Source: Macrostomum hystrix (taxonomy: Eukaryota; Animalia; Platyhelminthes). From it: DNA of 64,000 bases. Where the stretch lies: NCBI GenBank assembly GCA_950097015.1, contig CATNEN010000001.1, forward strand, positions 310,001 through 374,000, written 5' to 3'. Shown here in pieces: positions 4,394 through 64,000 of the stretch. The stretch's first letter is position 1. Every line of letters begins with the position of its first letter. The notes under the pieces are model-generated. The model did no database searches. It worked only from the letters and a program-made list of their open reading frames with translations, and was not told the origin of the DNA. A program made the position numbers and the translations under genes.

Positions 4394-4619
4394 GTGAGCA
4401 TGCAAAAGCATTCAACAATTTGGAGGCGGCGGCAAGGGACAGGGGAGCTACTGGGATGGGATTAGGGAAGCGGAGAGATCAGACAGATTGGCGCCACTAG
4501 TCTTTGCTCTCAACTGGAGCTGCATGAGGTCGGCAAAAGCCGACCCGCGGGATACGGCCCCCCAATGCTCCTGAATCCTGTCCCTTGGCACATTACAATC
4601 GCTCTTCCCAAGTATCGTC

Positions 4620-6970: not shown

Positions 6971-7502
6971 CAAAAACGGACTCTTTGTCAAACCCAACTA
7001 TACAAGATAAGGATGACCAAACGATGCTTGCCTGCGTGTTGCATTGTAAAATAAAAATAAATAGACCAGTATTGCTTTTCTATCAATTTTTCTTCAACTA
7101 TTTTGTAGTCATTTCTCTCTAGTTAAGCAGGGTCCCCATATATGATGCGGGCAAAGTGTGTGTAAGCATCCCACTCGGCACTGAACAATGCATTAAACTC
7201 ATGCCAGCATGTTTCGCCTGCTGCTGAATGTCAAGTCAATTCAGAATTCACTACACGTGAGCTTTGTCAATGTAAAACATTGCTACACTAAGCCAACCAA
7301 GCTGCGGGTCATTGGCTATGCGTTTAGGTTTCACTTCAATAATTATTTTATTTCCGAATGAACAGGTGTGGCTGATGTTTAAGAGTTGAAAAAAAATGGG
7401 AGAATAGTTGAGTCACCCAAAATGAGTCAATGTGGGCAGCTACGGATAACCCCATTTTGAGATTCAACATTGCCACTCCCACCTTCACTCTCAAATAGCT
7501 TT

Positions 7503-38518: not shown

Positions 38519-39174
38519 CACTGCAAATCTTTTATTGGAGACGGCTGAGAGCAAGTTAAATTTCACAAACTCTCGTACAAAAAAATAAAACGTGTTTTAT
38601 GACGCAAAAACTGCAGACAAAACTAAATGAGCAATAATTTGAAAACATCAAAACAAAATTACAAAAACTGGATTCGCGAAATAAACAAGAAATAATTAAT
38701 TTTCGTTCGGCTTAATTTAATTTCCGGTATCAAGTATTTTAGACTTTTAGTACAACTGAACTCATGTAATTTTTTAAAACCCATTTGTTATACTACATCA
38801 AACATTTTAAGAGCGCGTAATAGCATGATTACCTATAGGCTTAATTGTCTAATTAGCCAAAGATAACCGGTGACAAATTATTGCATTGGAATGGGCAAAA
38901 TGAAGCGAAAAATTATCGGCTTTAAATGCTGGGCTATGAACACAGTAATTTTCCAATAATTCAACACTTGCTAATGAAACAAGAAGCTTCAACTGTACAT
39001 GCCTTTCTTTTGAAGCAACATTTTTTTGAAACTATTATCTCTTCGCCAAAGGATGCCTGCTCAATTGAGGATTGTAATTTCACTAGCTTTGTCGCTAGGA
39101 GGTCAACTGATTTTTAATTGCTGTTTTCGCATCAATGCTTCGTGTTTACAGGAAATACAGTGCACTTCAAGCTG

Positions 39175-39965
39175 ACTCACTCCCACTCCCTGTCACCCCC
39201 TTTCACTCCCTCTCACTCCCTCTCACTGCCTCTCACTACCTCTCACTGCCTCTCACTCCCTCTCACTCCCTCTCACTCCCTCTCACTCCCTCCAACTCCC
39301 TCTCACTCCCTCTCACTGCTTCTCACTACCTCTCACTCCCTCTCACTCCCTCCAACTCCCTCTCACTCCCTCTCACTCCCTCTCACTCCCTCTCACTCCC
39401 TCTCACCCCCTTTCACTCCCTCTCACTCCCTCTCACTCCCTCTCGCTACCTCTCACTCCCTCTCACTCCCTCTCACTCCCTCTCACTACCCTCTCACTCC
39501 CTCCCACTACCTCTCACTCCCTCCAACTCCCTCTCACTCCCTCTCACTCCCTCTCACTCCCTCTCACTACCTCACACTCTTCTCACTCCCTCTCACTCCC
39601 TCTCACTGCCTCTCACTACCTCTCACTCCCTCTCACTCCCTCCAACTCCCTCTCACTCCCTCTCGCTACCTCTCACTCCCTCTCACTCCCTCCAACTCCC
39701 TCTCACTCCCTCTCGCTACCTCTCACTCCCTCTCACTCCCTCTCACCCCCTTTCACTCCCTCTCACTCCCTCTCACTCCCTCTCGCTACCTCTCACTCCC
39801 TCTCACTCCCTCTCACTCCCTCTCACTACCCTCTCACTCCCTCCCACTACCTCTCACTCCCTCCAACTCCCTCTCACTCCCTCTCACTCCCTCTCACTCC
39901 CTCTCACTACCTCACACTCTTCTCACTCCCTCTCACTAACGCTCACTCCCTCTCACTCCCTCCCT
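39175..39965. repeat. Minisatellite, 10-bp unit (TCTCACTCCC)
   Basis: Tandem periodicity. Confidence 0.95.
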
Positions 39966-40732
39966 CCCACGCACAACCTTATGCTGGGTACTTGGCATTT
40001 GGCAATGTCTACCTTATTTGTAAATCCTTTTGAACCCAAAACAGGTCAATACAGAGTTCATAGTTACTTTGTTTTTTTCAAATATTCATCAAAGAAGTCA
40101 AATACTCTTACGTTTTTCTGATGATCTTGCTAAAAGGCTTTAAATAATTATAAAAATCTCTTTGAGAAGGCATATCGATACTGACAATATATAATCTACT
40201 TTAATTCCTTTTTCCTCGCCTTTGTCGAGAATTATTTCGACATCTCAAATGACATATTCCAAAAAAATTCTACAATTTCTAATCAAAAAGGATTAGGAAC
40301 ACTAAACCTACTATTCGCACTCGATATCTCGCCGTAAAAACAAAGGTACGTGAGCCATTGGGGTGAGAATTTCCAACGCTGTGACCTTAACAAATAAACT
40401 GAATGGCAAAGTGCGAACACCAAGTATGCTACTTTTTTTAACTGAGCTTTGACAAAATACTATTTCCTAATACTGATTAAGCAGGGACACTTAAGGTGCT
40501 TCAATTTGTAAATATGAGGATTTGCAATCTAATGTGAGAATTTTCTTAGAAACCCTAGCAATACACAGCCATTGATTAGGTGATTGAAAAAAAACAGATT
40601 TTTTCCTTCAACCGAAGCCCTGCAGCCTAATTTTTCTCTGTTTGGTTGCTTGAGGTTGTCGAACTTGAGGAGTCTCGGAAAGGATTTTAAATCGGAAAGA
40701 TTTTTGTATTAAACATGAGCATGAGTTGTTGA

Positions 40733-43700
40733 AAGAATTCTAGTTGTAGATAAGCGATCCTAAATGATCTGAAGAATTCTAGTAGTAGATAAGCGATCCT
40801 AAATGATCTGAAGAATTCTAGTTGTAGATAAGCGATCCTAATTGATCTGAAGAATTCTAGTTGTAGATAAGCGATCCTAATTGATCTGAAGAATTCTAGT
40901 TGTAGATAAGCGATCCTAAATGATCTGAAGAATTCTAGTAGTAGATAAGCGATCCTAATTGATCTGAAGAATTCTAGTTGTAGATAAGCGATCCTAATTG
41001 ATCTGAAGAATTCTAGTTGTAGATAAGCGATCCTAATTGATCTGAAGAATTCTAGTTGTAGATAAGCGATCCTAATTGATCTGAAGAATTCTAGTTGTAG
41101 ATAAGCGATCCTAATTGATCTGAAGAATTCTAGTAGTAGACTAGCGATCCTAATTGATCTGAAGAATTCTAGTTGTAGATAAGCGATCCTAATTGATCTG
41201 AAGAATTCTAGTTGTAGATAAGCGATCCTAATTGATCTGAAGAATTCTAGTAGTAGACTAGCGATCCTAATTGATCTGAAGAATTCTAGTAGTAGACTAG
41301 CGATCCTAATTGATCTGAAGAATTCTAGTTGTAGATAAGCGATCCTAATTGATCTGAAGAATTCTAGTTGTAGATAAGCGATCCTAATTGATCTGAAGAA
41401 TTCTAGTTGTAGATAAGCGATCCCAATTGATCTGAAGAATTCTAGTTGTAGATAAGCGATCCTAATTGATCTGAAGAATTCTAGTTGTAGATAAGCGATC
41501 CTAATTGATCTGAAGAATTCTAGTTGTAGATAAGCGACCCCAATTGATCTGAAGAATTCTAGTAGTAGATAAGCGATCCTAATTGATCTGAAGAATTCTA
41601 GTTGTAGATAAGCGATCCTAATTGATCTGAAGAATTCTAGTTGTAGATAAGCGATCCTAATTGATCTGAAGAATTCTAGTTGTAGATAAGCGATCCTAAT
41701 TGATCTGAAGAATTCTAGTTGTAGATAAGCGATCCTAATTGATCTGAAGAATTCTAGTTGTAGATAAGCGATCCTAATTGATCTGAAGAATTCTAGTTGT
41801 AGATAAGCGATCCTAATTGATCTGAAGAATTCTAGTTGTAGATAAGCGATCCTAATTGATCTGAAGAATTCTAGTTGTAGATAAGCGACCCTAATTGATC
41901 TGAAGAATTCTAGTAGTAGATAAGCGATCCTAATTGATCTGAAGAATTCTAGTTGTAGATAAGCGATCCTAATTGATCTGAAGAATTCTAGTTGTAGATA
42001 AGCGATCCTAATTGATCTGAAGAATTCTAGTTGTAGATAAGCGATCCTAAATGATCTGAAGAATTCTAGTAGTAGATAAGCGATCCTAATTGATCTGAAG
42101 AATTCTAGTTGTAGACTAGCGATCCTAATTGATCTGAAGAATTCTAGTAGTAGATAAGCGATCCTAATTGATCTGAAGAATTCTAGTTGTAGATAAGCGA
42201 TCCTAATTGATCTGAAGAATTCTAGTTGTAGATAAGCGATCCTAATTGATCTGAAGAATTCTAGTTGTAGATAAGCGATCCTAATTGATCTGAAGAATTC
42301 TAGTTGTAGATAAGCGACCCTAATTGATCTGAAGAATTCTAGTTGTAGATAAGCGATCCTAATTGATCTGAAGAATTCTAGTTGTAGATAAGCGATCCTA
42401 ATTGATCTGAAGAATTCTAGTAGTAGATAAGCGATCCTAATTGATCTGAAGAATTCTAGTTGTAGATAAGCGACCCTAATTGATCTGAAGAATTCTAGTA
42501 GTAGATAAGCGATCCTAATTGATCTGAAGAATTCTAGTTGTAGATAAGCGATCCTAATTGAGCTGAAGAATTCTAGTTGTAGATAAGCGATCCCAATTGA
42601 TCTGAAGAATTCTAGTAGTAGATAACCGATCCTAAATGATCTGAAGAATTCTATTTGTAGATAAGCGATCCTAATTGATCTGAAGAATTCTAGTTGTAGA
42701 TAAGCGATCCTAATTGATCTGAAGAATTCTAGTTGTAGATAAGCGATCCTAATTGATCTGAAGAATTCTAGTTGTAGATAAGCGACCCTAATTGATCTGA
42801 AGAATTCTAGTAGTAGATAAGCGATCCTAATTGATCTGAAGAATTCTAGTTGTAGATAAGCGATCCTAATTGATCTGAAGAATTCTAGTTGTAGATAAGC
42901 GATCCTAATTGATCTGAAGAATTCTAGTTGTAGATAAGCGATCCTAAATGATCTGAAGAATTCTAGTAGTAGATAAGCGATCCTAATTGATCTGAAGAAT
43001 TCTAGTTGTAGATAAGCGATCCTAAATGATCTGAAGAATTCTAGTAGTAGATAAGCGATCCTAATTGAGCTGAAGAATTCTAGTTGTAGATAAGCGATCC
43101 TATTTGAGCTGAAGAATTCTAGTTGTAGACAAGCGATCCTAAATGATCTGAAGAATTCTAGTTGTAGACAAGCGATCCTAATTGAGCTGAAGAATTCTAG
43201 TTGTAGACAAGCGATCCTAATTGATCTGAAGAATTCTAGTAGTAGATAAGCGATCCTAATTGATCTGAAGAATTCTAGTAGTAGATAAGCGATCCTAATT
43301 GATCTGAAGAATTCTAGTAGTAGACAAGCGATCCTAAATGATCTGAAGAATTCTAGTAGTAGACAAGCGATCCTAAATGATCTGAAGAATTCTAGTAGTA
43401 GATAAGCGATCCTAAATGATCTGAAGAATTCTAGTAGTAGATAAGCGATCCTAATTGATCTGAAGAATTCTAGTAGTAGACAAGCGATCCTAATTGACCT
43501 GAAGAATTCTAGTTGTAGACAAGCGATCCTAATTGATCTGAAGAATTCTAGTAGTAGATAAGCGATCCTAATTGATCTGAAGAATTCTAGTAGTAGATAA
43601 GCGATCCTAATTGATCTGAAGAATTCTAGTTGTAGATAAGCGATCCTAATTGATCTGAAGAATTCTAGTTGTAGATAAGCGATCCTAATTGATCTGAAGA

Positions 43701-46700
43701 ATTCTAGTAGTAGACAAGCGATCCTAATTGATCTGAAGAATTCTAGTTGTAGATAAGCGATCCTAAATGATCTGAAGAATTCTAGTTGTAGATAAGCGAT
43801 CCTAATTGATCTGAAGAATTCTAGTTGTAGATAAGCGATCCTAATTGATCTGAAGAATTCTAGTTGTAGATAAGCGATCCTAATTGATCTGAAGAATTCT
43901 AGTTGTAGATAAGCGATCCTAATTGACCTGAAGAATTCTAGTTGTAGATAAGCGATCCTAAATGATCTGAAGAATTCTAGTAGTAGATAAGCGATCCTAA
44001 TTGATCTGAAGAATTCTAGTTGTAGATAAGCGATCCTAATTGATCTGAAGAATTCTAGTTGTAGATAAGCGATCCTAATTGATCTGAAGAATTCTAGTTG
44101 TAGATAAGCGATCCTAAATGATCTGAAGAATTCTAGTAGTAGATAAGCGATCCTAATTGATCTGAAGAATTCTAGTTGTAGACTAGCGATCCTAATTGAT
44201 CTGAAGAATTCTAGTAGTAGATAAGCGATCCTAATTGATCTGAAGAATTCTAGTTGTAGATAAGCGATCCTAATTGATCTGAAGAATTCTAGTTGTAGAT
44301 AAGCGATCCTAATTGATCTGAAGAATTCTAGTTGTAGATAAGCGATCCTAATTGATCTGAAGAATTCTAGTTGTAGATAAGCGACCCTAATTGATCTGAA
44401 GAATTCTAGTTGTAGATAAGCGATCCTAATTGATCTGAAGAATTCTAGTTGTAGATAAGCGATCCTAATTGATCTGAAGAATTCTAGTAGTAGATAAGCG
44501 ATCCTAATTGATCTGAAGAATTCTAGTTGTAGATAAGCGACCCTAATTGATCTGAAGAATTCTAGTAGTAGATAAGCGATCCTAATTGATCTGAAGAATT
44601 CTAGTTGTAGATAAGCGATCCTAATTGAGCTGAAGAATTCTAGTTGTAGATAAGCGATCCCAATTGATCTGAAGAATTCTAGTAGTAGATAACCGATCCT
44701 AAATGATCTGAAGAATTCTATTTGTAGATAAGCGATCCTAATTGATCTGAAGAATTCTAGTTGTAGATAAGCGATCCTAATTGATCTGAAGAATTCTAGT
44801 TGTAGATAAGCGATCCTAATTGATCTGAAGAATTCTAGTAGTAGACTAGCGATCCTAATTGATCTGAAGAATTCTAGTAGTAGACTAGCGATCCTAATTG
44901 ATCTGAAGAATTCTAGTTGTAGATAAGCGATCCTAATTGATCTGAAGAATTCTAGTTGTAGATAAGCGATCCTAATTGATCTGAAGAATTCTAGTTGTAG
45001 ATAAGCGATCCTAATTGATCTGAAGAATTCTAGTTGTAGATAAGCGATCCTAAATGATCTGAAGAATTCTAGTAGTAGATAAGCGATCCTAATTGATCTG
45101 AAGAATTCTAGTTGTAGATAAGCGATCCTAAATGATCTGAAGAATTCTAGTAGTAGATAAGCGATCCTAATTGAGCTGAAGAATTCTAGTTGTAGATAAG
45201 CGATCCTATTTGAGCTGAAGAATTCTAGTTGTAGACAAGCGATCCTAAATGATCTGAAGAATTCTAGTTGTAGACAAGCGATCCTAATTGAGCTGAAGAA
45301 TTCTAGTTGTAGACAAGCGATCCTAATTGATCTGAAGAATTCTAGTAGTAGATAAGCGATCCTAATTGATCTGAAGAATTCTAGTAGTAGATAAGCGATC
45401 CTAATTGATCTGAAGAATTCTAGTAGTAGACAAGCGATCCTAAATGATCTGAAGAATTCTAGTAGTAGACAAGCGATCCTAAATGATCTGAAGAATTCTA
45501 GTAGTAGATAAGCGATCCTAAATGATCTGAAGAATTCTAGTAGTAGATAAGCGATCCTAATTGATCTGAAGAATTCTAGTAGTAGACAAGCGATCCTAAT
45601 TGACCTGAAGAATTCTAGTTGTAGACAAGCGATCCTAATTGATCTGAAGAATTCTAGTAGTAGATAAGCGATCCTAATTGATCTGAAGAATTCTAGTAGT
45701 AGATAAGCGATCCTAATTGATCTGAAGAATTCTAGTTGTAGATAAGCGATCCTAATTGATCTGAAGAATTCTAGTTGTAGATAAGCGATCCTAATTGATC
45801 TGAAGAATTCTAGTAGTAGACAAGCGATCCTAATTGATCTGAAGAATTCTAGTTGTAGATAAGCGATCCTAAATGATCTGAAGAATTCTAGTTGTAGATA
45901 AGCGATCCTAATTGATCTGAAGAATTCTAGTTGTAGATAAGCGATCCTAATTGATCTGAAGAATTCTAGTTGTAGATAAGCGATCCTAATTGATCTGAAG
46001 AATTCTAGTTGTAGATAAGCGATCCTAATTGACCTGAAGAATTCTAGTTGTAGATAAGCGATCCTAAATGATCTGAAGAATTCTAGTAGTAGATAAGCGA
46101 TCCTAATTGATCTGAAGAATTCTAGTTGTAGATAAGCGATCCTAATTGATCTGAAGAATTCTAGTTGTAGATAAGCGATCCTAATTGATCTGAAGAATTC
46201 TAGTTGTAGATAAGCGATCCTAATTGATCTGAAGAATTCTAGTAGTAGACAAGCGATCCTAATTGATCTGAAGAATTCTAGTAGTAGATAAGCGATCCTA
46301 ATTGATCTGAAGAATTCTAGTTGTAGACAAGCGATCCTAATTGATCTGAAGAATTCTAGTAGTAGACTATCGATCCTAATTGACCTGAAGAACTCTAGTA
46401 GTAGATAAGCGATCCTAATTGATCTGAAGAATTCTAGTTGTAGATAAGCGATCCTAATTGATCTGAAGAATTCTAGTTGTAGACAAGCGATCCTAATTGA
46501 TCTGAAGAATTCTAGTTGTAGATAAGCGATCCTAATTGATCTGAAGAATTCTAGTTGTAGATAAGCGATCCTAATTGATCTGAAGAATTCTAGTTGTAGA
46601 TAAGCGATCCTAATTGATCTGAAGAATTCTAGTAGTAGATAAGCGATCCTAATTGATCTGAAGAATTCTAGTTGTAGATAAGCGATCCTAATTGATCTGA

Positions 46701-46767
46701 AGAATTCTAGTTGTAGATAAGCGATCCTAATTGATCTGAAGAATTCTAGTTGTAGATAAGCGATCCT
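40733..46767. repeat. Minisatellite, 39-bp unit (GATCTGAAGAATTCTAGTTGTAGATAAGCGATCCTAATT), ~155 copies
   Basis: Strict periodicity, substitution variants only. Confidence 0.98.
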
Positions 46768-47425
46768 GAAAGACTGGAAGGTTCCTGAAACTGAAAATGG
46801 ACAGACCTTCTTTCGGCCTATAAGGTGAGACAAACTTATTTATAAGCTAATTCTGTAATCCTGCCTTAGTACACCAGGTAAGTGTGCTGGCATGGCATCT
46901 TTAATCATATTTTATATTAGGTGTTGGCGGGAGCTGTAGGTTGCTGTAGATTTTGCCTGTTCTATAAATAGCAGACTTAGCATTGCCCCCTGCGAAGGGG
47001 GCATACACACGATTCTAAGCAACACTTTGAGAGGCACGTTTGTTTTTTTGTGGAGTTCACAGTCCTCTTGCTGTCTGTGGAGAAATAACTGCCCTCGGGG
47101 GGAGGGTGTTATTCGTTGCTAAGCGGATCTGTTTTCTCTGGTATATTAAATAATATTGTGCATATCGAATCATTGATTCGCCAGACAAAAAAGATCCGAC
47201 GATGCCGATGTTTTTTGTGATTCTAGAGGTTATTTAATCGGATAGAGCGAATTGGTCGAATATTTTAGGAGATGTAAAAAAATAATATATGGCTATTAGA
47301 AATGCCCGGATTCGCCAGCCAGAAGTTTGCCAGCTGCTGGACAGTTTGCTATGACGTTGTCCAGGATGTCTCTCACCAGCAACAATTTGATCTCACTAGC
47401 TCGTACAATCAGTGATTCAGAACGG

Positions 47426-47507: not shown

Positions 47508-47845
47508 AACCTCGTAGACCCTCTACAGTTAATCTGATTTTGCAGAAAAAAAACGTTTCGTAAGCTTTTTTTAGAAACATACTTTATATATAAGCAAAGG
47601 TAACAACAAAAGGTACTCATATTGTTCAATTGCATTTGTTTTTCAACTTTCTTGCTTTTCCTAGAGGCACTGAAAATTCTACTAATTCAAAGCAATCGAT
47701 ACAATGCATCGGCAGCTTCAATGAAACTGAACCAGGACTTGGCGATTGTGAAATGCTAAACTATTTTCTCTTTCAGAAAAAGCAGTAAATGCGACAAAAA
47801 TGAAAGGCACTAAAGTACTATAAAAGCTTCGAAAAAACGGAGTCA

Positions 47846-50800
47846 CAATCTCATCTGTAAACGGTTCCTCAATCTCATCTCTAAACTGATCCTCAATCTC
47901 ATCTCTTAACTGTTCCTCAATCTCATCTCTAAACTGATCCTCAATCTCACCTGTAAACTGATCCTCAATCTCATCTCTAAACTGATCCTCAATCTCACCT
48001 GTAAACTGATCCTCAATCTCATCTCTAAACTGATCCTCAATCTCATCTCTAAACGGATCCTCAATCTCATCTCTTAACTGTTCCTCAATCTCATCTCTAA
48101 ACGGATCCTCAATCTCATCTGTAAACGGATCCTCAATCTCATCTCTAAACTGATCCTCAATCTCATCTGTAAACTGATCCTCAATCTCATCTCTAAACTG
48201 ATCCTCAATCTCATCTGTAAACTGATCCTCAATCTCATCTCTAAACTGATCCTCAATCTCATCTCTAAACTGATCCTCAATCTCATCTGTAAACTGATCC
48301 TCAATCTCACCTGCAAACTGATCCTCAATCTCATCTCTAAACTGATCCTCAATCTCATCTGTAAACTGATCCTCAATCTCATCTGTAAACTGATCCTCAA
48401 TCTCATCTGTAAACTGATCCTCAATCTCATCTGTAAACTGATCCTCAATCTCATCTGTAAACTGATCCTCAATCTCATCTCTAAACTGATCCTCAATCTC
48501 ATCTCTAAACTGATCCTCAATCTCATCTGTAAACTGATCCTCAATCTCATCTCTAAACTGATCCTCAATCTCATCTGTAAACTGATCCTCAATCTCATCT
48601 GTAAACTGATCCTCAATCTCATCTGTAAACTGATCCTCAATCTCATCTGTAAACTGTTCCTCAATCTCATCTCTAAACGGATCCTCAATCTCATCTGTAA
48701 ACGGATCCTCAATCTCATCTCTAAACTGATCCTCAATCTCATCTGTAAACTGATCCTCAATCTCATCTCTAAACTGATCCTCAATCTCATCTGTAAACTG
48801 ATCCTCAATCTCATCTCTAAACTGATCCTCAATCTCATCTCTAAACTGATCCTCAATCTCATCTGTAAACTGATCCTCAATCTCACCTGCAAACTGATCC
48901 TCAATCTCATCTCTAAACTGATCCTCAATCTCATCTGTAAACTGATCCTCAATCTCATCTGTAAACTGATCCTCAATCTCATCTGTAAACTGATCCTCAA
49001 TCTCATCTGTAAACTGATCCTCAATCTCATCTGTAAACTGATCCTCAATCTCATCTGTAAACTGATCCTCAATCTCACCTGCAAACTGATCCTCAATCTC
49101 ATCTCTAAACTGATCCTCAATCTCATCTCTAAACTGATCCTCAATCTCATCTCTAAACTGATCCTCAATCTCATCTCTAAACTGATCCTCAATCTCATCT
49201 CTAAACTGATCCTCAATCTCATCTCTAAACTGATCCTCAATCTCATCTCTAAACTGATCCTCAATCTCATCTGTAAACTGATCCTCAATCTCATCTCTTA
49301 ACTGTTCCTCAATCTCATCTGTAAACTGATCCTCAATCTCATCTGTAAACTGATCCTCAATCTCATCTGTAAACTGATCCTCAATCTCATCTCTAAACTG
49401 ATCCTCAATCTCATCTGTAAACTGATCCTCAATCTCATCTGTAAACTGATCCTCAATCTCATCTCTAAACTGATCCTCAATCTCATCTGTAAACTGATCC
49501 TCAATCTCATCTGTAAACTGATCCTCAATCTCATCTCTAAACTGATCCTCAATCTCATCTCTAAACTGATCCTCAATCTCATCTGTAAACTGATCCTCAA
49601 TCTCATCTGTAAACTGATCCTCAATCTCATCTGTAAACTGATCCTCAATCTCATCTGTAAACTGATCCTCAATCTCATCTCTAAACTGATCCTCAATCTC
49701 ATCTGTAAACTGATCCTCAATCTCATCTGTAAACTGATCCTCAATCTCATCTCTAAACTGATCCTCAATCTCATCTCTAAACTGATCCTCAATCTCATCT
49801 GTAAACTGATCCTCAATCTCATCTGTAAACTGATCCTCAATCTCATCTCTAAACTGATCCTCAATCTCATCTGTAAACTGATCCTCAATCTCACCTGCAA
49901 ACTGATCCTCAATCTCATCTCTAAACTGATCCTCAATCTCAACTGTAAACTGATCCTCAATCTCATCTGTAAACTGATCCTCAATCTCATCTGTAAACTG
50001 ATCCTCAATCTCATCTCTAAACTGATCCTCAATCTCATCTGTAAACTGATCCTCAATCTCACCTGCAAACTGATCCTCAATCTCATCTCTAAACTGATCC
50101 TCAATCTCACCTGCAAACTGATCCTCAATCTCATCTCTAAACTGATCCTCAATCTCATCTGTAAACTGATCCTCAATCTCATCTGTAAACTGATCCTCAA
50201 TCTCATCTCTAAACGGATCCTCAATCTCATCTCTAAACTGATCTTCAATCTCATCTGTAAACTGATCCTCAATCTCATCTCTAAACTGATCCTCAATCTC
50301 ATCTCTAAACTGATCCTCAATCTCATCTCTAAACTGATCCTCAATCTCATCTCTTAACTGTTCCTCAATCTCATCTCTAAACTGATCCTCAATCTCATCT
50401 CTTAACTGTTCCTCAATCTCATCTCTAAACGGATCCTCAATCTCAACTGTAAACGGATCCTCAATCTCATCTGTAAACTGATCCTCAATCTCATCTCTAA
50501 ACGGATCCTCAATCTCAACTGTAAACTGATCCTCAATCTCATCTGTAAACTGATCCTCAATCTCATCTCTAAACTGATCCTCAATCTCATCTGTAAACTG
50601 ATCCTCAATCTCATCTGTAAACTGATCCTCAATCTCACCTGCAAACTGATCCTCAATCTCATCTCTAAACTGATCCTCAATCTCATCTCTAAACTGATCC
50701 TCAATCTCATCTGTAAACTGATCCTCAATCTCATCTGTAAACTGATCCTCAATCTCATCTGTAAACTGATCCTCAATCTCATCTGTAAACTGATCCTCAA

Positions 50801-53656
50801 TCTCATCTCTAAACTGATCCTCAATCTCATCTGTAAACTGATCCTCAATCTCATCTGTAAACTGATCCTCAATCTCATCTCTAAACTGATCCTCAATCTC
50901 ATCTCTAAACTGATCCTCAATCTCATCTCTAAACTGATCCTCAATCTCATCTGTAAACTGATCCTCAATCTCATCTGTAAACTGATCCTCAATCTCATCT
51001 GTAAACTGATCCTCAATCTCATCTGTAAACTGATCCTCAATCTCATCTCTAAACTGATCCTCAATCTCATCTGTAAACTGATCCTCAATCTCATCTGTAA
51101 ACTGATCCTCAATCTCATCTGTAAACTGATCCTCAATCTCATCTCTAAACTGATCCTCAATCTCATCTGTAAACTGATCCTCAATCTCATCTGTAAACTG
51201 ATCCTCAATCTCATCTCTAAACTGATCCTCAATCTCATCTGTAAACTGATCCTCAATCTCATCTGTAAACTGATCCTCAATCTCATCTCTAAACGGATCC
51301 TCAATCTCATCTCTAAACTGATCCTCAATCTCATCTCTAAACTGATCCTCAATCTCATCTGTAAACTGATCCTCAATCTCATCTGTAAACTGATCCTCAA
51401 TCTCATCTGTAAACTGATCCTCAATCTCATATCTTAACTGATCCTCAATCTCATCTCTAAACTGATCCTCAATCTCATCTGTAAACTGATCCTCAATCTC
51501 ATCTCTAAACTGATCCTCAATCTCATCTGTAAACTGATCCTCAATCTCATCTGTAAACTGATCCTCAATCTCATCTCTAAACTGATCCTCAATCTCATCT
51601 GTAAACTGATCCTCAATCTTATCTGTAAACTGATCCTCAATCTCATCTCTAAACTGATCCTCAATCTCATCTGTAAACTGATCCTCAATCTCATCTGTAA
51701 ACTGATCCTCAATCTCATCTGTAAACTGATCCTCAATCTCATCTGTAAACTGATCCTCAATCTCATCTGTAAACTGATCCTCAATCTCATCTCTAAACGG
51801 ATCCTCAATCTCATCTCTAAACTGATCTTCAATCTCATCTGTAAACTGATCCTCAATCTCATCTCTAAACTGATCCTCAATCTCATCTCTAAACTGATCC
51901 TCAATCTCATCTGTAAACTGATCCTCAATCTCATCTGTAAACTGATCCTCAATCTCATCTCTTAACTGTTCCTCAATCTCATCTCTAAACTGATCCTCAA
52001 TCTCATCTCTTAACTGTTCCTCAATCTCATCTCTAAACGGATCCTCAATCTCAACTGTAAACGGATCCTCAATCTCATCTGTAAACTGATCCTCAATCTC
52101 AACTGTAAACGGATCCTCAATCTCAACTGTAAACGGATCCTCAATCTCAACTGTAAACGGATCCTCAATCTCATCTGTAAACGGATCCTCAATCTCATCT
52201 CTAAACGGATCCTCAATCTCAACTGTAAACGGATCCTCAATCTCAACTGTAAACGGATCCTCAATCTCATCTGTAAACTGATCCTCAATCTCAACTGTAA
52301 ACGGATCCTCAATCTCAACTGTAAACGGATCCTCAATCTCAACTGTAAACGGATCCTCAATCTCATCTGTAAACGGATCCTCAATCTCATCTGTAAACGG
52401 ATCCTCAATCTCATCTCTAAACGGATCCTCAATCTCAACTGTAAACGGATCCTCAATCTCAACTGTAAACTGATCCTCAATCTCATCTGTAAACTGATCC
52501 TCAATCTCATCTCTAAACTGATCCTCAATCTCATCTCTAAACTGATCCTCAATCTCATCTGTAAACTGATCCTCAATCTCATCTCTAAACTGATCCTCAA
52601 TCTCATCTCTTAACTGTTCCTCAATCTCATCTCTAAACTGATCCTCAATCTCATCTCTTAACTGTTCCTCAATCTCATCTCTAAACTGATCCTCAATCTC
52701 ATCTCTTAACTGTTCCTCAATCTCATCTCTAAACGGATCCTCAATCTCAACTGTAAACGGATCCTCAATCTCAACTGTAAACTGATCCTCAATCTCATCT
52801 GTAAACTGATCCTCAATCTCATCTGTAAACTGATCCTCAATCTCATCTCTAAACTGATCCTCAATCTCATCTCTAAACTGATCCTCAATCTCATCTCTTA
52901 ACTGTTCCTCAATCTCATCTCTAAACTGATCCTCAATCTCATCTCTTAACTGTTCCTCAATCTCATCTCTAAACTGATCCTCAATCTCATCTCTTAACTG
53001 TTCCTCAATCTCATCTCTAAACGGATCCTCAATCTCAACTGTAAACGGATCCTCAATCTCAACTGTAAACTGATCCTCAATCTCATCTGTAAACTGATCC
53101 TCAATCTCATCTGTAAACTGATCCTCAATCTCATCTGTAAACTGATCCTCAATCTCATCTCTAAACTGATCCTCAATCTCATCTCTAAACTGATCCTCAA
53201 TCTCATCTGTAAACTGATCCTCAATCTCATCTGTAAACTGATCCTCAATCTCATCTGTAAACTGATCCTCAATCTCATCTCTAAACTGATCCTCAATCTC
53301 ATCTCTAAACTGATCCTCAATCTCATCTGTAAACTGATCCTCAATCTCATCTGTAAACTGATCCTCAATCTCATCTCTAAACTGATCCTCAATCTCATCT
53401 GTAAACTGATCCTCAATCTCATATCTTAACTGATCCTCAATCTCAACTGTAAACTGATCCTCAATCTCATCTCTTAACTGATCCTCAATCTCATCTGTAA
53501 ACTGATCCTCAATCTCATCTGTAAACTGATCCTCAATCTCATCTGTAAACTGATCCTCAATCTCAACTGTAAACTGTTCCTCAATCTCATCTCTAAACTG
53601 ATCCTCAATCTCACCTTTAAACTGATCCTCAATCTCAGCTGTAAACTGTTCCTCAA
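47846..53656. repeat. Minisatellite, 24-bp unit (AAACTGATCCTCAATCTCATCT[G/C]T), ~240 copies
   Basis: Strict periodicity with no visible indels. Confidence 0.98.
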
Positions 53657-54239
53657 GACCGCCCACACTCAACTGACTTCCTCAAGGCAATGCGGATCCT
53701 ATGAGCTAAAATGTTTTCTAAAAGGAATCTTATTTACTGCTTTCCGGCCCCGATTAGTCCTTTTAAGTAGCTTTCGGTAGTCGTGTGCTTCGCCCCTGCA
53801 TCCTTTGCAGCAACTCATCCACAAAATAATTTAACGTGTTGCCTTGAAAGCAGCCACTAAAGGTTGATATGGTTGTTCCAAGTATCAAATTACGTAAGAA
53901 GTACGTATGTTGCATGCTAAATGTTTGAAGGCCGATTGCAATATTGAATTATTCAATTAACTTTCAGTCAAACGACACGCAATATTGCACCCGGCATAAC
54001 TATTCGTGTCAGTATAGTTAGCATAGTTTCATTATATTTTTCTGTCTTGATTTTATTCTATTTAATCTAGGTTATATCTGTTTACTCATTTGCAGTCTTA
54101 AAAGTACATGAATATTTATTTACAGCTAGATTGCTACGCTTTTGAAGATCATAATTGACAAAATATATTATCATTGTAGTAACTGATAACACCTGCCAAA
54201 TCGGACCAGATGTGCTGTCGACAGCACAGCCGCAGCTGG

Positions 54240-55430: not shown

Positions 55431-56445
55431 TGTTTTAAAAATATTTGAGAGAACTTTTAAAACTGCGAACCAATATAAAAAGTAGGTCAGAGTACAAGAA
55501 AGTAACGGCGCCCAATCAGAATTATAGGGAAGCTCGTTTACTACATTCAAAATAGATGCCAATTCAGTCTGCGAGCTTTTCTACCAAATCGGTCAGATTT
55601 CATAATCTCCAAATATGACGAAAATGGACATAATTGAACATAATTTTACTTTTATTAATAAAATTGTCTGTTCTTGTGCATCTTTCGTTTTGCATATAAT
55701 GCTTGTCTCCATTCTTCTCCTCGTCTGCTAATTTATTTGAGCTCTCTGTTCTTCACTGTAATTAAAATTTTCATAGCTCATATAGAATTGAAGGCTGAAA
55801 TTTACGCTGCAGAAATAGGAGTTAAGATCAAGCTTATCTTGCGAATGCTGTATAGTACGAGTATGACCTCTGAGTCATTACTTCAACTTTAAAAGATTTT
55901 ACTCGCCGGTGAGTATTTTACGTCCAAAAACCAACAGTTGTTATGAGTTGAAAGAACTTAACTCTCATACGGAAACAAAATATGCAAAAAGTGCAGAACT
56001 GTGGCGGTCACGCAACAATCGCGTGCGCGCTCCGGCAGCCACCCCAACCCCGACCAGGAAGGTCGGTGCTATGTACATGAACGCTGTGCGTTGACTGGCT
56101 GCCCAGTGTACACCGCTGGCCGATATAACTTAAGAACTTTGCTTCTTTCAAATAAACCTTAGTTGACTCAACTCAACTAGCCTCAGAACATTACTTTGTT
56201 TTTTAGTAAAACAATAGTGTAGTAAAACTCAGCAGCAGCATTAGATAAGGCCTGCCGTATTTTACCGTCGTAGCATAGTAACGAGATAAAATGCGAACAC
56301 GCACTACACTAATTAAATTCCAGCTCACCCAACCAGCGACCAAATTTCAGAAAAAAACTTTCAGAATAGAGAAATCCACAAAAACGATTGTCCGTTGTGC
56401 GTTTGTAACTTCAAACGTTTGGTTTGAAGTTTTAAAATTTTAGTA

Positions 56446-59400
56446 ATGGAGCCTGATGCTTGCCCGCCAAAGCCAGAGGCTGTTGAACAACTCGTGTCAG
56501 CAGTGACACGACGTGACTTTGGCAAGCTCGCCGACTCCGGCATCAAGCCAGAATGGTTACTTAGCAACAATTTGTTGCTAGACTTTCTCGCTCACTGTTC
56601 CATATCAGCGTGTGACGATGCCTGTGAGAAAAAAATCCTGGAGAAATCCTTGTCTTTAATACAATGCATGGAGGAGCAACAGCGATCTGAAATTCTGCAC
56701 CGCTGCTTAGAGGTTGGGCACATCGATTTAGCAGCAACGCTGCTTCAAAGGGTGCAAATTAATTTGGACTTCAGAGATAGCTCTGGATCTACCGCTCTCA
56801 TGTTGGCAGCTGATGGCGGAGACAAAGAAATGATCGACCAATTACTAGATAGAGGTGCGTCGCTGCACGCCGTTGACAACCAAGCTTGTACAGCTCTGGC
56901 CCGAGCATGTCAGGCGGGTCACGTGAGAGCAGCGCATACCCTGGCCGACAAGGGCGCCGATGCGGCGCATCGAGATATACAGGGTTACACTTGCCTGCAG
57001 CTGGCTGAGCAGTTTGGAAGGAAGCAGATTTTGCGCCTGTTTGGTCAGCTAAGACTTCCGGCCGATAGGTGAGACTTTTTTAACACAATTTATTAATCCA
57101 ATCAAGCTTAAGTTTTCAATCTTCTCAAAATTGCGAAATCGAATTACAGCCAACCAGGTATCAGGCCCTTCTCTAGCGTCGAGCTAAATGGAGAACAGTT
57201 GCACTTCATCCTCCGCGATGCTGGCTTCACGGATCAGAGGGCTCGATGCCAACAGCAGTTGGCAGACCTGCTGCAGGCAGTCGCTCAAGCGGTTACTGGT
57301 GAAAACAGGCACATGACAGGAAGCTTTTCCGATGGCTGGGGAAACAATCTACGACAGGTAAGCGGCAAAACCGAAGAAAACTCGGACATCGACTGGACGA
57401 TATTTATCAATGGAGAGCCATTTCATCTGGAAGACGGCTGCGAGTGCCAAGGTTCCGTAACAAAGAAGCAGGTGGACGACGGACATGTCTCATTGACAGT
57501 AGCAACAGGTAAGTCGTTTTCTGAAATGTTTTAAAAAAATTAATCTGGCAGATTTTCTTCAAAAAACCCACCTTTTGAATGAAACTAAAATAAATTAGTG
57601 ATTCTTTTTTACTCAATCTAATTTAGGTGGGCAGCCAGCGAAAACGGCCTACCCCTGTGGAGTTCGGCCTACAATCGATACTTGCCACGCTTTCGTTTGT
57701 TGCAGCTCCCTGCCGCTCTCTGCTCGCAAGTTACTTGATCGTGATCCAAAGCAGAGCAGTGCGTGCGTGCATCTAGTCAGAGCTAGTAGACCGAATGGAA
57801 AGAACGAGTTAAGAGTGAGCTTTAGCCTGCAAGAGAAGCAGCTAATGAGGCTGCTGAGCACTATCCAAGGGCAGTTGTTTATACTAATCAAATTCGCATT
57901 CAAGGAATACCTGCCAACTGTTCGGAATGCGTCAGGTCTGAAGTCTTATCACGCGAAGACTCTTATGTTCCACATTTTAGAAGATATTCCACTAACGTCA
58001 GAGAAGTGGACCCCGAACAATCTGATAACTATATTGAAACTTGCTCTGGAGAAGATGATCGAATTTTTAGAGTTAAAGAGCACAAATGAGCAGTGCATGC
58101 CGCACTTTTTCCTGCCCAACGCATGGCTCTACTGGCAGAGTGCCGGAATCGGTGGTGATTTCGATAGCACAAAGCACACAATTCGACAACAAATCAAAGA
58201 GCTAACGCGCGACATCAGCCAGCTGACGGATCACGTGAAGAAATTTGTGCGACCTCTGGAGTCGGACAGCCTCTACTTCCACCCATTCACACTGCTGCCA
58301 CTCACTTCGCAGCCCGCAGTTTCTGAAGTTCGCGAAGACAGAGTCCATCAGCTCGCTGACGTATACAGCATCGTGCACGAAATCATGGTCGAGCTGCAGT
58401 CACACTCGTGCGACCAACAAAATGTCAGACAGCAACTCGCTTTGCTGCGTGACTTGAGCTGGTGCAGGTGCACTGCACGCTGCTTGACTGCCATGGCTCA
58501 TTTGAAGTTCGGTGAGACAGACAAGGCTAAGCAAGCCATCAAGGATCTCGAGGGTCACGTTGTGCAGCGAGGTTGGAGCCCGACGGATTTCAACGATGCC
58601 TCGGTAACGCTGAGTGGCGATTGGAACTGGCCGAAAGACAAGGACTGGGCGTGGCGGTTCTGTGTGCCAACCAATGCGCAGCCGCGATTCGAGTTCCTGC
58701 CTGAGTTCACGCAGACTCTGTTCACGGCGAGGCTTTCGCAGCCGCAGTCGGCACATCTCTACGCAAACTTCTGCTGCGTGAGCTGGAGTCTGCAGGCCGA
58801 GCTGCTTGGCGTCTGCGAGGTAGCCAGCTGGCATCGACAGTTAAGCGAGGATCCGGACTTCGAGGAGCTGCTGACTCTGGCTCACTACAGTCCAGTTGGT
58901 TATCAAACGGACTTATTAAGTGCACTCCTGTTTGACTCCATTCTGTCAAGATGTTTGAATAAGAGAAATTTAGAATGTTCAAACTGGACCTCCGTCTCTG
59001 TAGACGGCTCGAAGGACGCAATCTATTCACAGGCTGCGAATTTTGCCGCCATGAATGGCTACTGGAGCGCTGTCTACTTTCATCTTGATAAAATTAGCGA
59101 GGCTGAAGTGAAAGACAGTTTGTGTATCCGATTCGTTCAATTCGTTTCCTTTGGTGACATTGAGCAGGTTCTTTGTGTCTTGCTGAAATTAGTTTCCAAC
59201 GCAAAAATGTTTCAGTACCGAAAGCATGCGGCAATACGAGCCGCTAGCACGGGTCACACCGAGGTCGCATGCGGCCTACTAAAACCATTGGAAGATTCGA
59301 AGCTCAAAAGAATTTTCTGCTGTGAAGCTGCAAGATGCGCAGCGGCGGGGGGCCACTCTGCCACCACAGAAGCTCTGTCTCGTCTAAATGATGACGAAGA

Positions 59401-62400
59401 AGAATGCCTTCGACGCGGACTTTCAGGTGCGATAGCCAGCAGTCGACTGGATGTTGTGAAATCAATTGGCATTCGACCTTGCTGGCTGCTGCGAGAAAAA
59501 TTTCTTTTGGACTTTCTCGCAAGCAGCTCGCTTTCTGGAAGCAAAATTTCTAAGCAAATCTTGGGTAAAACAGTTTCTCAAATATCAGACATGGATCCTG
59601 AAGAGCGCTGTCAGCTTCTGTGTCGTTGCATCACTATGGGTCACGTTACCTTGGTGATAGAAACGCTTCGAAGCTTAGATTCAGCAAATATTGATTGTTC
59701 CGACGTCTCGGGAACGACTGCTCTCATGCTGGCTGCTGACATCGGAGATGAGTATATAGTAACAAAGCTGCTCGATGCTGGGTCATCTCTGTGCGCAGTG
59801 GATAAGCGATGTCGCACTGCTTTGTCGCGAGCGTGTCAGGCGGGTCACGTGACGGTGGCGAAGGTTCTGGTAGACCGAGGTGCCGATCTGATGCATCGCG
59901 ACTCAAACAGTCAAACTTGTCTTGATATTGCTTGCAAATATGGACGACTCAACATTCTGGAAATCTTCGGTGGGGGTCCTTTGATGTGAGTTGCTTCGAT
60001 TTATTTAACTTATACCATTATTCGACATTGCAAGGTCACTGTTCTATATCAGATTTTTCTATCGGATTTCATTTCAGATCAAAGAACAACCAGTCGGACA
60101 GTGCTGTCGTCCCGTATGTTTCAATTCGTTTTCTTGAACATATTAATATGAACTAATAGCATGCATACATACATGTAGCTAGTAGCAAAACATTTACAGA
60201 CACCTACAGGAAAATTTTTCTTAATTTTTTTTAAGTCTAAGAACGACAGTTTTTTTATAGAATGAATGTTCGTTCGAACTATCTACGAGTAGCATAAATT
60301 CGTTTAAGAAGTTGCGGCTTCTACTATTATACATATATTTTTGTGACAGCTAGCTGTATCGCAGGTGAAAAAAACTACAGTGTGAAATGACAACTCCTGT
60401 CTTATTTTAGAGATTCACCGCTAAATGGCCAAGTCCTCTCGGATGAAGAACTGAGTTCCGAGATTTCACGATTGTTTAATTTAGCTGGCTTCTCCCAACA
60501 GAGAGCTCAATGTGTGCAGAAGCTTTCTGACCTTCTTCAAGATGTTTCGTCCATTGTGACAGGCGTCGATGTGCGAATAACGGGCAGCTTTTCCGAGGGT
60601 TTCGCCAGCAACATGTCGCAATTGACAGGCAGAATTTCGTCTGATTCCGACATCGACTGGTGCGTCTTTGTGACCCGCGAATTGTTTCATTTGAAAGATG
60701 GGTGCAAATGTTCTTCTGTGAAAGATGCGCAAAAGGTGATCATCAAGGATGGTTTTGCATCGTTTCCGACTTCAGTAGGTGAGTCCGTCTGGCTAGGAGC
60801 TGACTGGCTCCAGAAAAGCGCAATTCAGCAACCAGTTTGCTATTAACCTTTTTTGTCATTCTATTGATTTTCTTTAAGTACGAGTACAGGAACAATAAAA
60901 TGTTTAGATTTTACATGCAAACTTATTCTAAACTCCAGCTTTGTGTCCCATTTTGGGCTTTGAACAAACCGGCTTTGAAAAAACCGGGTGTGCTTGAAGT
61001 TCGCGAATATTATACGTCATTTATACGACATTATAGGCTACTACATATAAGATGCGTATGTAAGAATTATCTACGTCATTTTGGCTTGATTTGCATACGA
61101 ACCATGTGATTTAAAGTTCTATATAACTTTCGGGCCTAAAATTAAATAATAAATGACATCAGCTCATTTGCCAATTTTTAATGAACTTTCTCATAATCCT
61201 CATCATTGCAGGCCTGATGCGTCGGTACGAAGAGACTCAGTTTGCCTCTGGAGTGCGACCGAAGATGGATACAAAGAATGTAGTCGCCTGCTGCCGCCGG
61301 TTCTGTGAAGATAGGGTCGAAAAGCTTCTGCCTAACAGTTTCGAGAAAGTGGTGCTGATGCCGTCTCCGCGACTTTCGCTATCTAGTCAAGCTATCGTCA
61401 GTTTCGCTTTCCAAGAAAAACAAATAATGAGGCAACTCAGCACCCCGGAGATTCATCTATTTATGCTAATCAAAACTGCAATGACAAAACTGCCAAGCAA
61501 GAATCCAGCCCAGTCGCTTACCAGTACAAATGCCAAGATTCTGTTTTTCTACATTATTGAAACAATTCGTCGCCAGAATAAGGCGCTAGAAGAAAAGATG
61601 CTCATCAAATATGTTAGGGACAGTATTGATCAATTGCTGGGTTTTTTTCAAATCAGCAACTTAGTTCACGAGTGCTTGCCACACTTCATTATGCCCGAGA
61701 TCGCCCTGAGCTTCAGCGATTCTGTTCCTGGTCGGGACATAACTGCAACCAAAGCCTTCGTCAAAGATCGTCTGATCGAACTAAAGCGCAACATCAGCCA
61801 GCTGACGGATCACGTGAAGAAATTTGTGCGACCTCTGGAGTCGGACAGCCTCTACTTCCACCCATTCACACTGCTGCCACTCACTTCGCAGCCCGCAGTC
61901 TCTGAAGTTCGAGAAGACAGAGTCCATCAGCTCGCTGACGTATACAGCATCGTGCACGAAATCATGGTCGAGCTGCAGTCACACTTGTGCGACCAACAAA
62001 ATGTCAGACAGCAACTCGCTTTGCTGCGTGACTTGAGCTGGTGCAGGTGCACTGCACGCTGCTTGACTGCCATGGCTCATCTGAAGTTCGGGGAGACAGA
62101 CAAGGCTAAGCAAGCCATCAAGGATCTCGAGGGTCACGTTGTGCAGCGAGGTTGGAGCCCGACGGATTTCAACGATGCCTCGGTAACGCTGAGTGGCGAT
62201 TGGAACTGGCCGAAAGACAAGGACTGGGCGTGGCGGTTCTGTGTGCCAACCAATGCGCAGCCGCGATTCGAGTTCCTGCCTGAGTTCACGCAGACTCTGT
62301 TCACGGCGAAGCTTTCGCAGCCGCAGTCGGCACATCTCTACGCAAACTTCCGCTGCGTGAGCTGGAGTCTGCAGGCCGAGCTGCTTGGCGTCTGCGAGGT

Positions 62401-62602
62401 AGCCAGCTGGCATCGACAGTTGAGCGAGGATCCGGACTTCGAGGAGCTGCTGACTCTGGCTCACTACAGCGGCAACCTCCAGGATCTCATATTCTGCAAG
62501 GAGCAGATGCAGAAAATCAAGGAGGAGCGACGCATCGCAATGGATGAACAGGGGGAGAACATAATAGATTCTGTTTTAGCGAAAATCGCCAGCCTTTACT
62601 GA
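56446..62602 (+). CDS. Tandem ankyrin-repeat + cGAS/Mab-21-like (cGLR) nucleotidyltransferase protein, 6 exons, ~1711 aa
   Basis: Exons 56446-57068, 57150-57508, 57627-59985, 60078-60113, 60411-60778, 61212-62602 (5136 nt, GT-AG, phases consistent). ANK motifs GSTALMLAA / CTALARACQAGH occur twice. NTase motifs TGSFSDG..SDIDW and TGSFSEG..SDIDW. Mab-21 C-lobe motifs VSFSLQEKQLM, LKSYHAKTLMF, CMPHFFLPN. Confidence 0.85.
58212..58890 (+). repeat. 679-bp near-identical intragenic duplicate, copy A (copy B at 61791-62469)
   Basis: Constant offset of 3579, no indels, about 8 substitutions counted by eye. Confidence 0.95.
61791..62469 (+). repeat. 679-bp near-identical intragenic duplicate, copy B
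   Basis: Matches 58212-58890. Confidence 0.95.
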
Positions 62603-63237: not shown

Positions 63238-63642
63238 TCAAGCTGCTGGACCACCTCCTTGACTAGATACTAAACTCAGAAGTCGCTCCTCCAGCTCTTG
63301 AAGCTTCTCAGAGAACTCGCGCTTCGTTTCTCGAATCTCCGCTTTGAGATTGGCATTCTCCGATTGCACGCGATTCAGAGTCTCGTCCATAGACACTACT
63401 CTCTTCTCCATTGTGCCCAGTCGCTCCTTGATATGACAAACTTCCTCTATCGCCAGACGAGAGTGTCTCTCAGCACCGTCAGAGTGATGCTGCCGCATTT
63501 TCACACCGTCGAGTGACTGGTATGTGCAGCCGAGAGGCGCAAACGCACAATGAGTCTCAAAGTTGGGCACAAACCCTTGATGATCTGTAGATCCAACGCT
63601 GCTTGTTGAACCACCAGGGTAGCTCTCGGCTGACATCTCGGT
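63238..63642 (-). CDS. Terminal exon of a TRAF-type zinc finger + coiled-coil protein (no MATH domain)
   Basis: Acceptor aaatttag|ACC GAG ATG in frame. CAFAPLGC...HHSDGAERH matches the CxFxxxGC..H..H last TRAF finger, followed by a heptad-rich coil and a stop. Any upstream exons lie outside the window. Confidence 0.6.
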   Translation of the reverse strand, partial: TEMSAESYPGGSTSSVGSTDHQGFVPNFETHCAFAPLGCTYQSLDGVKMRQHHSDGAERHSRLAIEEVCHIKERLGTMEKRVVSMDETLNRVQSENANLKAEIRETKREFSEKLQELEERLLSLVSSQGGGPAA

Positions 63643-63684: not shown

Positions 63685-64000
63685 CTGATAGATATGGGAT
63701 AGTGTCCTGATAGATATGGGATATTTTCCTGATAGATATGGGATAGTGTCCTGATAGATATGGGATAGTGTCCTGATAGATATGGGATAGTGTCCTGATA
63801 GATGTGGGATAGTGTCCTGATAGATATGGGATAGTGTCCTGATAGATATGGGATTGTGTCCTGATAGATATGGGATAGTGTCCTGATAGATATGGGATAG
63901 TGTCCTGATAGATATGGGATAGTGTCCTGATAGATATGGGATAGTGTCCTGATAGATATGGGATAGTGCCCTGATAGATATGTGATAGTGTCCTGATAGA
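63685..64000. repeat. Minisatellite, 22-bp unit (GATAGATATGGGATAGTGTCCT), runs off the right edge
   Basis: Tandem periodicity. Confidence 0.95.

Follow-up and report, generated by a model that had tools for sequence, protein, structure and literature searches.

The question raised by positions 56446–62602 (forward strand) of the Macrostomum hystrix DNA analyzed here is whether two consecutive copies of the same domain set, each combining ankyrin (ANK) repeats, a cGAS-like nucleotidyltransferase (NTase), and a TPR-like helical domain, belong to one protein or to two, and what such a protein would do. The whole stretch that was analyzed, hereafter the window, comprises 64,000 nucleotides and corresponds to C1:310001–374000 of a 220-Mb genome in 42 contigs. 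We conclude that the locus is probably one expressed gene, formed by the in-frame fusion of two old neighboring members of a macrostomid family of ANK-containing cGAS-like receptors (ANK-cGLRs), and that its product likely synthesizes a nucleotide messenger in a ligand-gated manner. We refer to the first and second halves of this gene as unit 1 and unit 2.

The locus appears as five long open reading frames (ORFs). Three-frame translation together with the raw sequence resolved these ORFs into six mutually in-frame exons separated by GT..AG introns of phases 2, 1, 2, 2, and 1 (Table 1). When spliced, the exons amount to 5,136 nt, which corresponds to 1,711 codons plus the stop. The frame is closed upstream by an in-frame TGA at 56425–56427, 7 codons 5' of the ATG, and it is continuous and without stop codon between units 1 and 2. 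The TGA codons at 57070–57072 and 59987–59989 fall within the donor sites of exon 1 (AG/GTGAGA) and exon 3 (AT/GTGAGT), respectively. The two coding exons of unit 2 (122 and 462 codons) have no internal stops and are correctly spliced. In addition, exon 5, which encodes the NTase N-lobe of unit 2 (NTase2), contains no Met 5' of the GS motif in its frame and is therefore unable to start a protein alone. An earlier note, made from the sequence alone, had proposed six GT-AG exons forming one frame of approximately 1,711 residues, and this holds on intron phases, splice sites, and the RNA junctions described below. Both apparent stops do lie inside donors on the raw sequence, and the positions that it gave for the GS and DxD motifs of both halves are correct. 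The mirrored introns that it described were confirmed in part: intron positions match between the halves, with the exception of an extra 36-nt micro-exon in the second half.

Table 1. Features of the two-unit ANK-cGLR gene, followed by the minisatellite arrays of the window.
Feature	Position	Strand	Evidence
Exon 1: start codon and unit 1 ankyrin repeats, 207 complete codons	56446–57068	+	Pfam Ank_2, 5.5e-16; RNA contigs
Exon 2: unit 1 NTase N-lobe, GS 57319–57324, DID 57385–57393	57150–57508	+	Family consensus TGSYAEGW...SDIDW
Exon 3 (57627–59985), first part: unit 1 third-Asp strand (IDTCHAF; candidate Asp 57677–57679) and Mab-21 C-lobe (RVSFS, SYHAKT)	57627–58198	+	PF20266; alignment
Exon 3, middle: unit 1 TPR-like helical domain, copy 1 of the 692-bp tract	58199–58890	+	blastn; repeat search
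Exon 3, last part: fusion junction, degenerate ANK-like repeats, unit 2 ankyrin repeats	58891–59985	+	Pfam Ank_2, 4.1e-16; BLAST to M. lignano ANK arrays
Exon 4: 36-nt micro-exon, without counterpart in the first half	60078–60113	+	Both flanking junctions, 4/4 runs
Exon 5: unit 2 NTase N-lobe, GS 60583–60588, DID 60649–60657	60411–60778	+	Alignment; 45% identity to exon 2
Exon 6 (61212–62602), first part: diverged unit 2 C-lobe, candidate third Asp in MDTKNV (61268–61270)	61212–61777	+	32% identity to unit 1 C-lobe
Exon 6, middle: unit 2 TPR-like domain, copy 2 of the 692-bp tract	61778–62469	+	Repeat search; blastn; AlphaFold2
Exon 6, end: 43-residue family-typical tail and stop; unit 1 without tail	62470–62602	+	Aligns to M. 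lignano C-termini (exon 6 to residue 461)
Minisatellite arrays	272–1037, 4565–7122, 13834–15705, 16097–17435, 18165–19991, 24934–28415, 39118–40121, 40687–46833, 47718–53672, 63685–64000		

Transcription of this gene was analyzed in four public runs from one organism and one 2020 study, which were used as Logan contigs aligned to positions 56380–61770; the second copy of the 692-bp repeat lies outside the region covered. We take the contigs to be RNA-derived because introns are missing from them. All five junctions, each of the GT..AG type, were present in the 4 runs, and contig depth was zero within introns at 60160–60339 and 60880–61059. The contigs start at 56380 or earlier and run through the ATG, and one of them (X3 record 12) joins exons 1, 2, and 3. 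Another contig, of 1,304 nt (X3 record 15), consists with zero mismatches of 59488–59985, 60078–60113, 60411–60776, and 61210–61613, and thus links the ANK array of unit 2 via the micro-exon to NTase2 and the unit 2 C-lobe. No direct joint between 59985 and 60411 was reported in the contigs of the four runs, and therefore the micro-exon appears to be constitutive. The stop at 59987 is spliced out in all 4 runs, and therefore the transcripts do not end there; transcripts ending at the 59989 stop, which according to the earlier note would have refuted a single gene, are not what the RNA shows. Continuity of a single mRNA across the 692-bp repeat is suggested by the unbroken coverage, the lack of a stop codon in unit 1, and the lack of a Met before the GS motif in the NTase2 exon. 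A mis-join of the assembly at the repeat was considered and rejected, since the RNA carries the 58890/58891 junction with zero mismatches and since what follows copy 1 keeps the frame and shows homology to ANK arrays. Loose contig ends were observed at 58111 and 57380, where contigs of other paralogues partly align to unit 1. The continuation of one such contig, '..ATGGACGATGCGCCGCTCTACTTCAAGAAC', agrees with the family consensus MPDAPLYFKN, and these samples therefore also contain transcripts of other members of the family.

Pfam, fold, and BLAST searches of this gene were made exon by exon. The earlier note had suggested a search for Mab-21, Mab-21_C, and Ank. Ank was found in both halves (exon 1 and the C-terminal end of exon 3) and Mab-21_C (PF20266) in unit 1 only (30.9 bits; cut-off 24.1). 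The unit 2 C-lobe gave no Pfam match at E ≤ 1, though it shares 32% identity with the C-lobe of unit 1; both NTase exons were without significant Pfam match, and Mab-21 (PF03281) matched neither unit. The fold was modeled on a full-length homologue, P0022 (659 amino acids, no ANK repeats), which shares approximately 53% to 54% identity with exon 3 across the C-lobe and the helical domain. With a 31-row family alignment, AlphaFold2 produced a P0022 model with a pLDDT of 83.8 and a pTM of 0.83, for which the top Foldseek matches were all cGAS (from E 7.5e-8). VIA-align superimposed this model on cGAS (6cta_A; Z 14.7, 263 residues, root-mean-square deviation 3.4) and on the oyster Cv-cGLR1 (8gjw; Z 14.2), covering model residues 21–335. 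Searching the whole PDB with a family profile built without the ANK rows retrieved only cGAS (E 6.5e-5), Mab21L1, and cGLR1; the profile that included these rows was uninformative because it was swamped by ankyrin proteins. The predicted fold of the family is thus cGAS-like, and the cGAS/Mab-21 fold that had been expected from the sequence is borne out on the homologue. The ~270-residue C-terminal domain, modeled from window positions 61796–62599 (pLDDT 87.9), is predicted to be helical with a small beta insert. It gave only generic TPR-like/alpha-solenoid matches (RopB, Z 8.5; BtubC, Z 8.4), and no specific structural relative is claimed because Z scores of up to 8.5 are within the noise for helical models.

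The catalytic signatures of the NTase are present in both units: TGSF, SDIDW, and IDTCHAF in unit 1, and TGSF, SDIDW, and MDTKNV in unit 2. The family alignment shows that the TGSF..GW, SDIDW, and RP..D motifs are kept in both, in agreement with the GS, DxD, and candidate third Asp that had been predicted in each half. From the alignment and its position on the strand, this third Asp would be the equivalent of cGAS D319. Compared with human/mouse cGAS (PDB 6cta) and Crassostrea virginica Cv-cGLR1 (8gjw), the modeled family shares the bilobal NTase fold over approximately 260 residues (Z 14–15) and the layout of the GS / [DE]x[DE] / D triad at an identity of 15% to 21%. In contrast, the loop between the GS and DxD motifs has approximately 21 residues in the window family and approximately 12 in cGAS, no zinc-thumb or DNA-binding features are recognizable in it, and the window family has extra ANK and TPR-like domains.

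Despite their common layout, the two units are not alike. Of the 84 columns of the cGAS-like core that are at least 85% conserved among the M. lignano homologues, 72 are kept in unit 1 and only 47 in unit 2 (exon 5 and the first part of exon 6), while the 61 conserved columns of the C-terminal domain are kept to nearly the same extent (56 in unit 1 and 58 in unit 2). Unit 1 carries RVSFS and SYHAKT, as do the family consensus and cGAS (..RLSFS.., ..SYHVKT..). In unit 2, RVSFS is changed to IVSFA and SYHAK to STNAK, and the nucleotide-pocket residues that match SYH and RxSFS of cGAS, which we take to be R376/S380 and Y436/H437 in cGAS numbering, are gone. The idea of a pseudo-dimer put forward by the earlier note is purely conjectural. 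The two halves are not equivalent, the unit 2 core being strongly diverged and without the conserved pocket residues. Identity between the two units is 49% in the ANK repeats, 45% in the NTase exon, and 32% in the C-lobe, and rises to 98% in the C-terminal domain. At the DNA level, blastn and the repeat search delimit this similarity to a 692-bp tract with sharp edges (58199–58890 versus 61778–62469, 98.4% identity), the flanks of which are mostly too diverged for blastn, with a single 147-bp stretch in the ANK region at 69%. The mosaic identity and the sharp-edged tract therefore point to old paralogues the C-terminal domains of which were equalized by recent gene conversion. The 3' edge of the tract is the exact fusion point: past ..LAHYS, unit 2 proceeds to the 43-residue family tail and the stop, whereas in unit 1 the frame stays open through degenerate ANK-like repeats and the ANK array of unit 2.

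The gene belongs to a large family. Searching the genome with exon 6 identified at least 93 family loci (177 candidates), mostly without stops and many of them in tandem arrays on C1. The pair in the window is the only one spaced 3.5 kb apart among these loci. Another long open frame in the family (C2:3317332–3320877(-), 1,181 amino acids) was considered as a second two-unit gene and rejected, since its tail is a low-complexity repeat: the last exon of a family member runs there into approximately 60 tandem copies of the 11-residue 'HPSKLRASSVN'. In the public protein sets, all relatives with a source name are from Macrostomum lignano and at most 55% identical, one other clear family member (P0034) is on a JGI contig, and scanning 1.84 billion representatives exhaustively with HMMER yielded only 62 matches. 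Outside this genome, the family is thus found in these sets almost only in M. lignano. The ANK arrays of the M. lignano members are variable, and according to precomputed Pfam annotations the cGLR core has relatives that carry a fused caspase p20 domain (P0031), protein kinase domain (P0010), or B-box/Tudor domains (P0040), which suggests that domains have been shuffled in this family. Most members conserve the triad and the GS motif; the DxD motif is lost in the paralogues P0037, P0039, and P0041.

The genome also contains one candidate STING ligand-binding domain, at C2:9104529–9104996(-) of the same assembly (G000). It scores 25 bits (E 1.4e-5) with PF15009, the cut-off of which is 27, its match covers profile positions 3–145 of 182, and it contains 'LRLILPKL'. 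Searches with this candidate by phmmer against the PDB gave no match, a word-based search gave no homologue, and the ESM Atlas returned only low-score Roc/Ras clusters, which we took as noise. This candidate is a lead, not a finding.

The earlier note did not recall this architecture as characterized, and an unheard-of architecture is not what the comparison with known proteins indicates. According to Li et al. 2023 (bioRxiv 10.1101/2023.02.22.529553; PMC9980059), TPR or ankyrin modules occur in some cGLRs, whereas others combine several cGLR domains in fusions 'similar to OAS2 and OAS3' (Fig. 1C/S2A). Five M. lignano members of this family are listed in Table S3 of that study (samples 89–93, including PAA68676.1, which is P0003); they were cloned without the ANK region, and their Ank_2 domains are given in Table S2 (PMC9980059). 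The same study states that most flatworms lack cGLR signaling, and the flatworms in its Table S5 have no cGLR and no STING (Li et al. 2023; PMC9980059). A published account of a two-unit ANK-cGLR was not found in our literature search.

The M. lignano ANK-cGLRs (e.g., PAA68676.1/BOX15_Mlig016402g1, P0003) have the same order of ANK repeats, NTase, Mab-21 C-lobe, helical domain, and tail as the window units, are 45% to 55% identical to unit 1 exon by exon, and share with the window the motifs TGS[YF]..GW, SDIDW, RP..DTC, RVSFS, and YHAKT. They are mostly single units of 650 to 1,270 residues that end with the tail, whereas the window protein has two units of which the first lacks it, and none of them is a close orthologue of the window protein (best identity 47% to 55%). 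Three M. lignano models, P0061 (A0A1I8GXZ3, 1,346 amino acids), P0100 (A0A1I8GXH6), and P0017, do present the cGLR-ANK-cGLR order of the window, and unit A of P0061 also ends without tail at the point equivalent to 'HYS', as unit 1 does. However, these are automatic gene models, two of the three truncated, that are only 25% to 50% identical to the window units; their junctions differ from that of the window, and P0017 keeps the tail.

Like the multi-cGLR fusions and OAS2/OAS3, the window protein has two NTase modules per polypeptide, one of which is clearly more diverged; the continuous frame and the RNA junctions place both in one frame, although no single contig spans the 692-bp repeat. Unlike in those proteins, an ANK array and a TPR-like domain accompany each module. 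The inactive domains of OAS2 and OAS3 are N-terminal and without the acidic triad, whereas the diverged module of the window protein is C-terminal and has kept it. A catalytically dead unit of the OAS2/OAS3 type, lacking the triad, is thus not found here, since both units keep it.

Taken together, these data can be accommodated in the following scenario. Two old neighboring ANK-cGLR family members would have fused in frame when unit 1 lost its 43-residue tail and stop and came to run directly into the ANK array of unit 2. Unit 1 looks like a standard family enzyme. In unit 2, the metal-binding triad is retained within a strongly diverged core, and we therefore infer for unit 2 an altered specificity or a regulatory role, in loose analogy to OAS2/OAS3. 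Gene conversion has recently made both C-terminal domains nearly identical. The protein may produce a nucleotide second messenger on ligand binding as part of innate immunity; the variable ANK arrays would then serve recognition or autoinhibition.

Several observations weigh against this scenario. The fold evidence comes from the homologue P0022 and not from the window protein, whose catalytic core spans several exons, and the STING candidate is below the Pfam cut-off. No enzymatic activity is known for this family, and none of the five M. lignano members has the note that marks the 15 active enzymes in Table S3 (PMC9980059). The divergence of unit 2 could be simple decay. On the RNA side, no contig of the four runs joins unit 1-specific to unit 2-specific sequence, because the 692-bp repeat breaks short-read contigs, and the contig that crosses position 58890 (X1 record 4, 58861–59168) does so with only k-1 = 30 nt on its left.

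It is possible, though unlikely, that the members of the family are not cyclic-nucleotide immune sensors at all and act as Mab21-like scaffolds with a non-catalytic or non-immune role, which would agree with the match to Mab-21_C only and not to PF03281, with the position of the M. lignano members outside the enzymes annotated as active in the published screen, with the loss of DxD in three paralogues, and with the score of the STING candidate. Such a role does not fit the triad and the GS motif, which most members and the two units of the window have conserved, and the structures that match best, cGAS and cGLR, are those of active enzymes. In addition, at least 93 mostly intact tandem copies with variable ANK arrays and caspase, kinase, and B-box fusions fit a repertoire of immune receptors.

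The divergence of unit 2 bears on whether the fusion has been selected. A deletion could have fused two tandem paralogues by accident, leaving a unit 2 that has no selected two-unit function and is decaying while still transcribed. The low retention of family-conserved residues in its core, the loss of the equivalents of both cGAS pocket motifs, and the status of the window pair as the sole one with 3.5-kb spacing are compatible with this. Nevertheless, the exons of unit 2 are stop-free and spliced correctly, including the micro-exon, its three catalytic acidic residues and GS motif are kept, and similar concatenations occur in three M. lignano models, and we regard an accident as improbable.

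Still more improbable is that the locus makes two proteins, with unit 2 (ANK2-cGLR2) produced from an internal promoter or a spliced-leader acceptor in exon 3 and an internal Met and the long frame being partly incidental, since, even though Macrostomum uses spliced-leader trans-splicing, Met codons are present in the linker, contigs cannot reveal RNA starts, and the repeat interrupts the linkage of the halves, unit 1 has no stop before the spliced-out one at 59987 and therefore any unit 1 mRNA reads on into ANK2 and beyond, no foreign 5' sequence was reported between 58891 and 59985 in the contig alignment, and contig depth is similar over both halves, which is a weak measure only.

The fusion of two ANK-cGLRs would thus be the best explanation of the locus. 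A more elaborate form of it, to which we assign a low probability, is that of an intramolecular two-module cGLR in which the diverged, triad-retaining module and the two ANK arrays gate the canonical module or alter its product, the ligand being a protein and not a nucleic acid. The receptor would then be one of a repertoire of more than 90 genes that signals to a divergent STING, within a phylum from which cGLR-STING signaling is reported to be mostly lost.

The surroundings of the gene consist mostly of long minisatellite arrays (Table 1), such as a 24-bp unit repeated 152 times at 50000–53656 and a 22-bp unit repeated 14 times at 63685–64000, which produce very large spurious ORFs and pronounced strand skews. 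At 310 kb from the beginning of C1, the window may be a subtelomeric-type region. An ORF run at 8016–14336(+) has cadherin-repeat-like motifs (..DVNDNAP.., ..DxNDExP..) and a predicted transmembrane stretch, and judged by eye is probably a protocadherin-like gene. A 433-residue ORF at 35938–37239(-) has several hydrophobic segments and could be a GPCR-like membrane protein. Approximately 640 bp past the stop of the two-unit gene, a convergent ORF of 132 residues at 63238–63636(-) combines a Cys/His-rich N-terminus with a coiled coil and gave only coiled-coil noise in Pfam.

Within a very large flatworm family of candidate immune sensors that has already been catalogued, the two-unit gene is an unusual member, and not a new kind of system. 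What is new, within this known kind, is a single chain that combines two complete ANK-cGLR units and is supported by transcripts. As a single gene it adds little beyond what is catalogued. The two-unit protein would, if active, offer a natural test case for the cooperation of tandem cGAS-like modules, for ANK arrays as sensing or autoinhibitory modules in cGLRs, and for the way in which gene conversion and fusion reshape a fast-evolving receptor array. At the level of the genome, the at least 93 mostly intact ANK-cGLR loci and the candidate STING of this 220-Mb macrostomid qualify the published statement that cGLR signaling is lacking in most flatworms.

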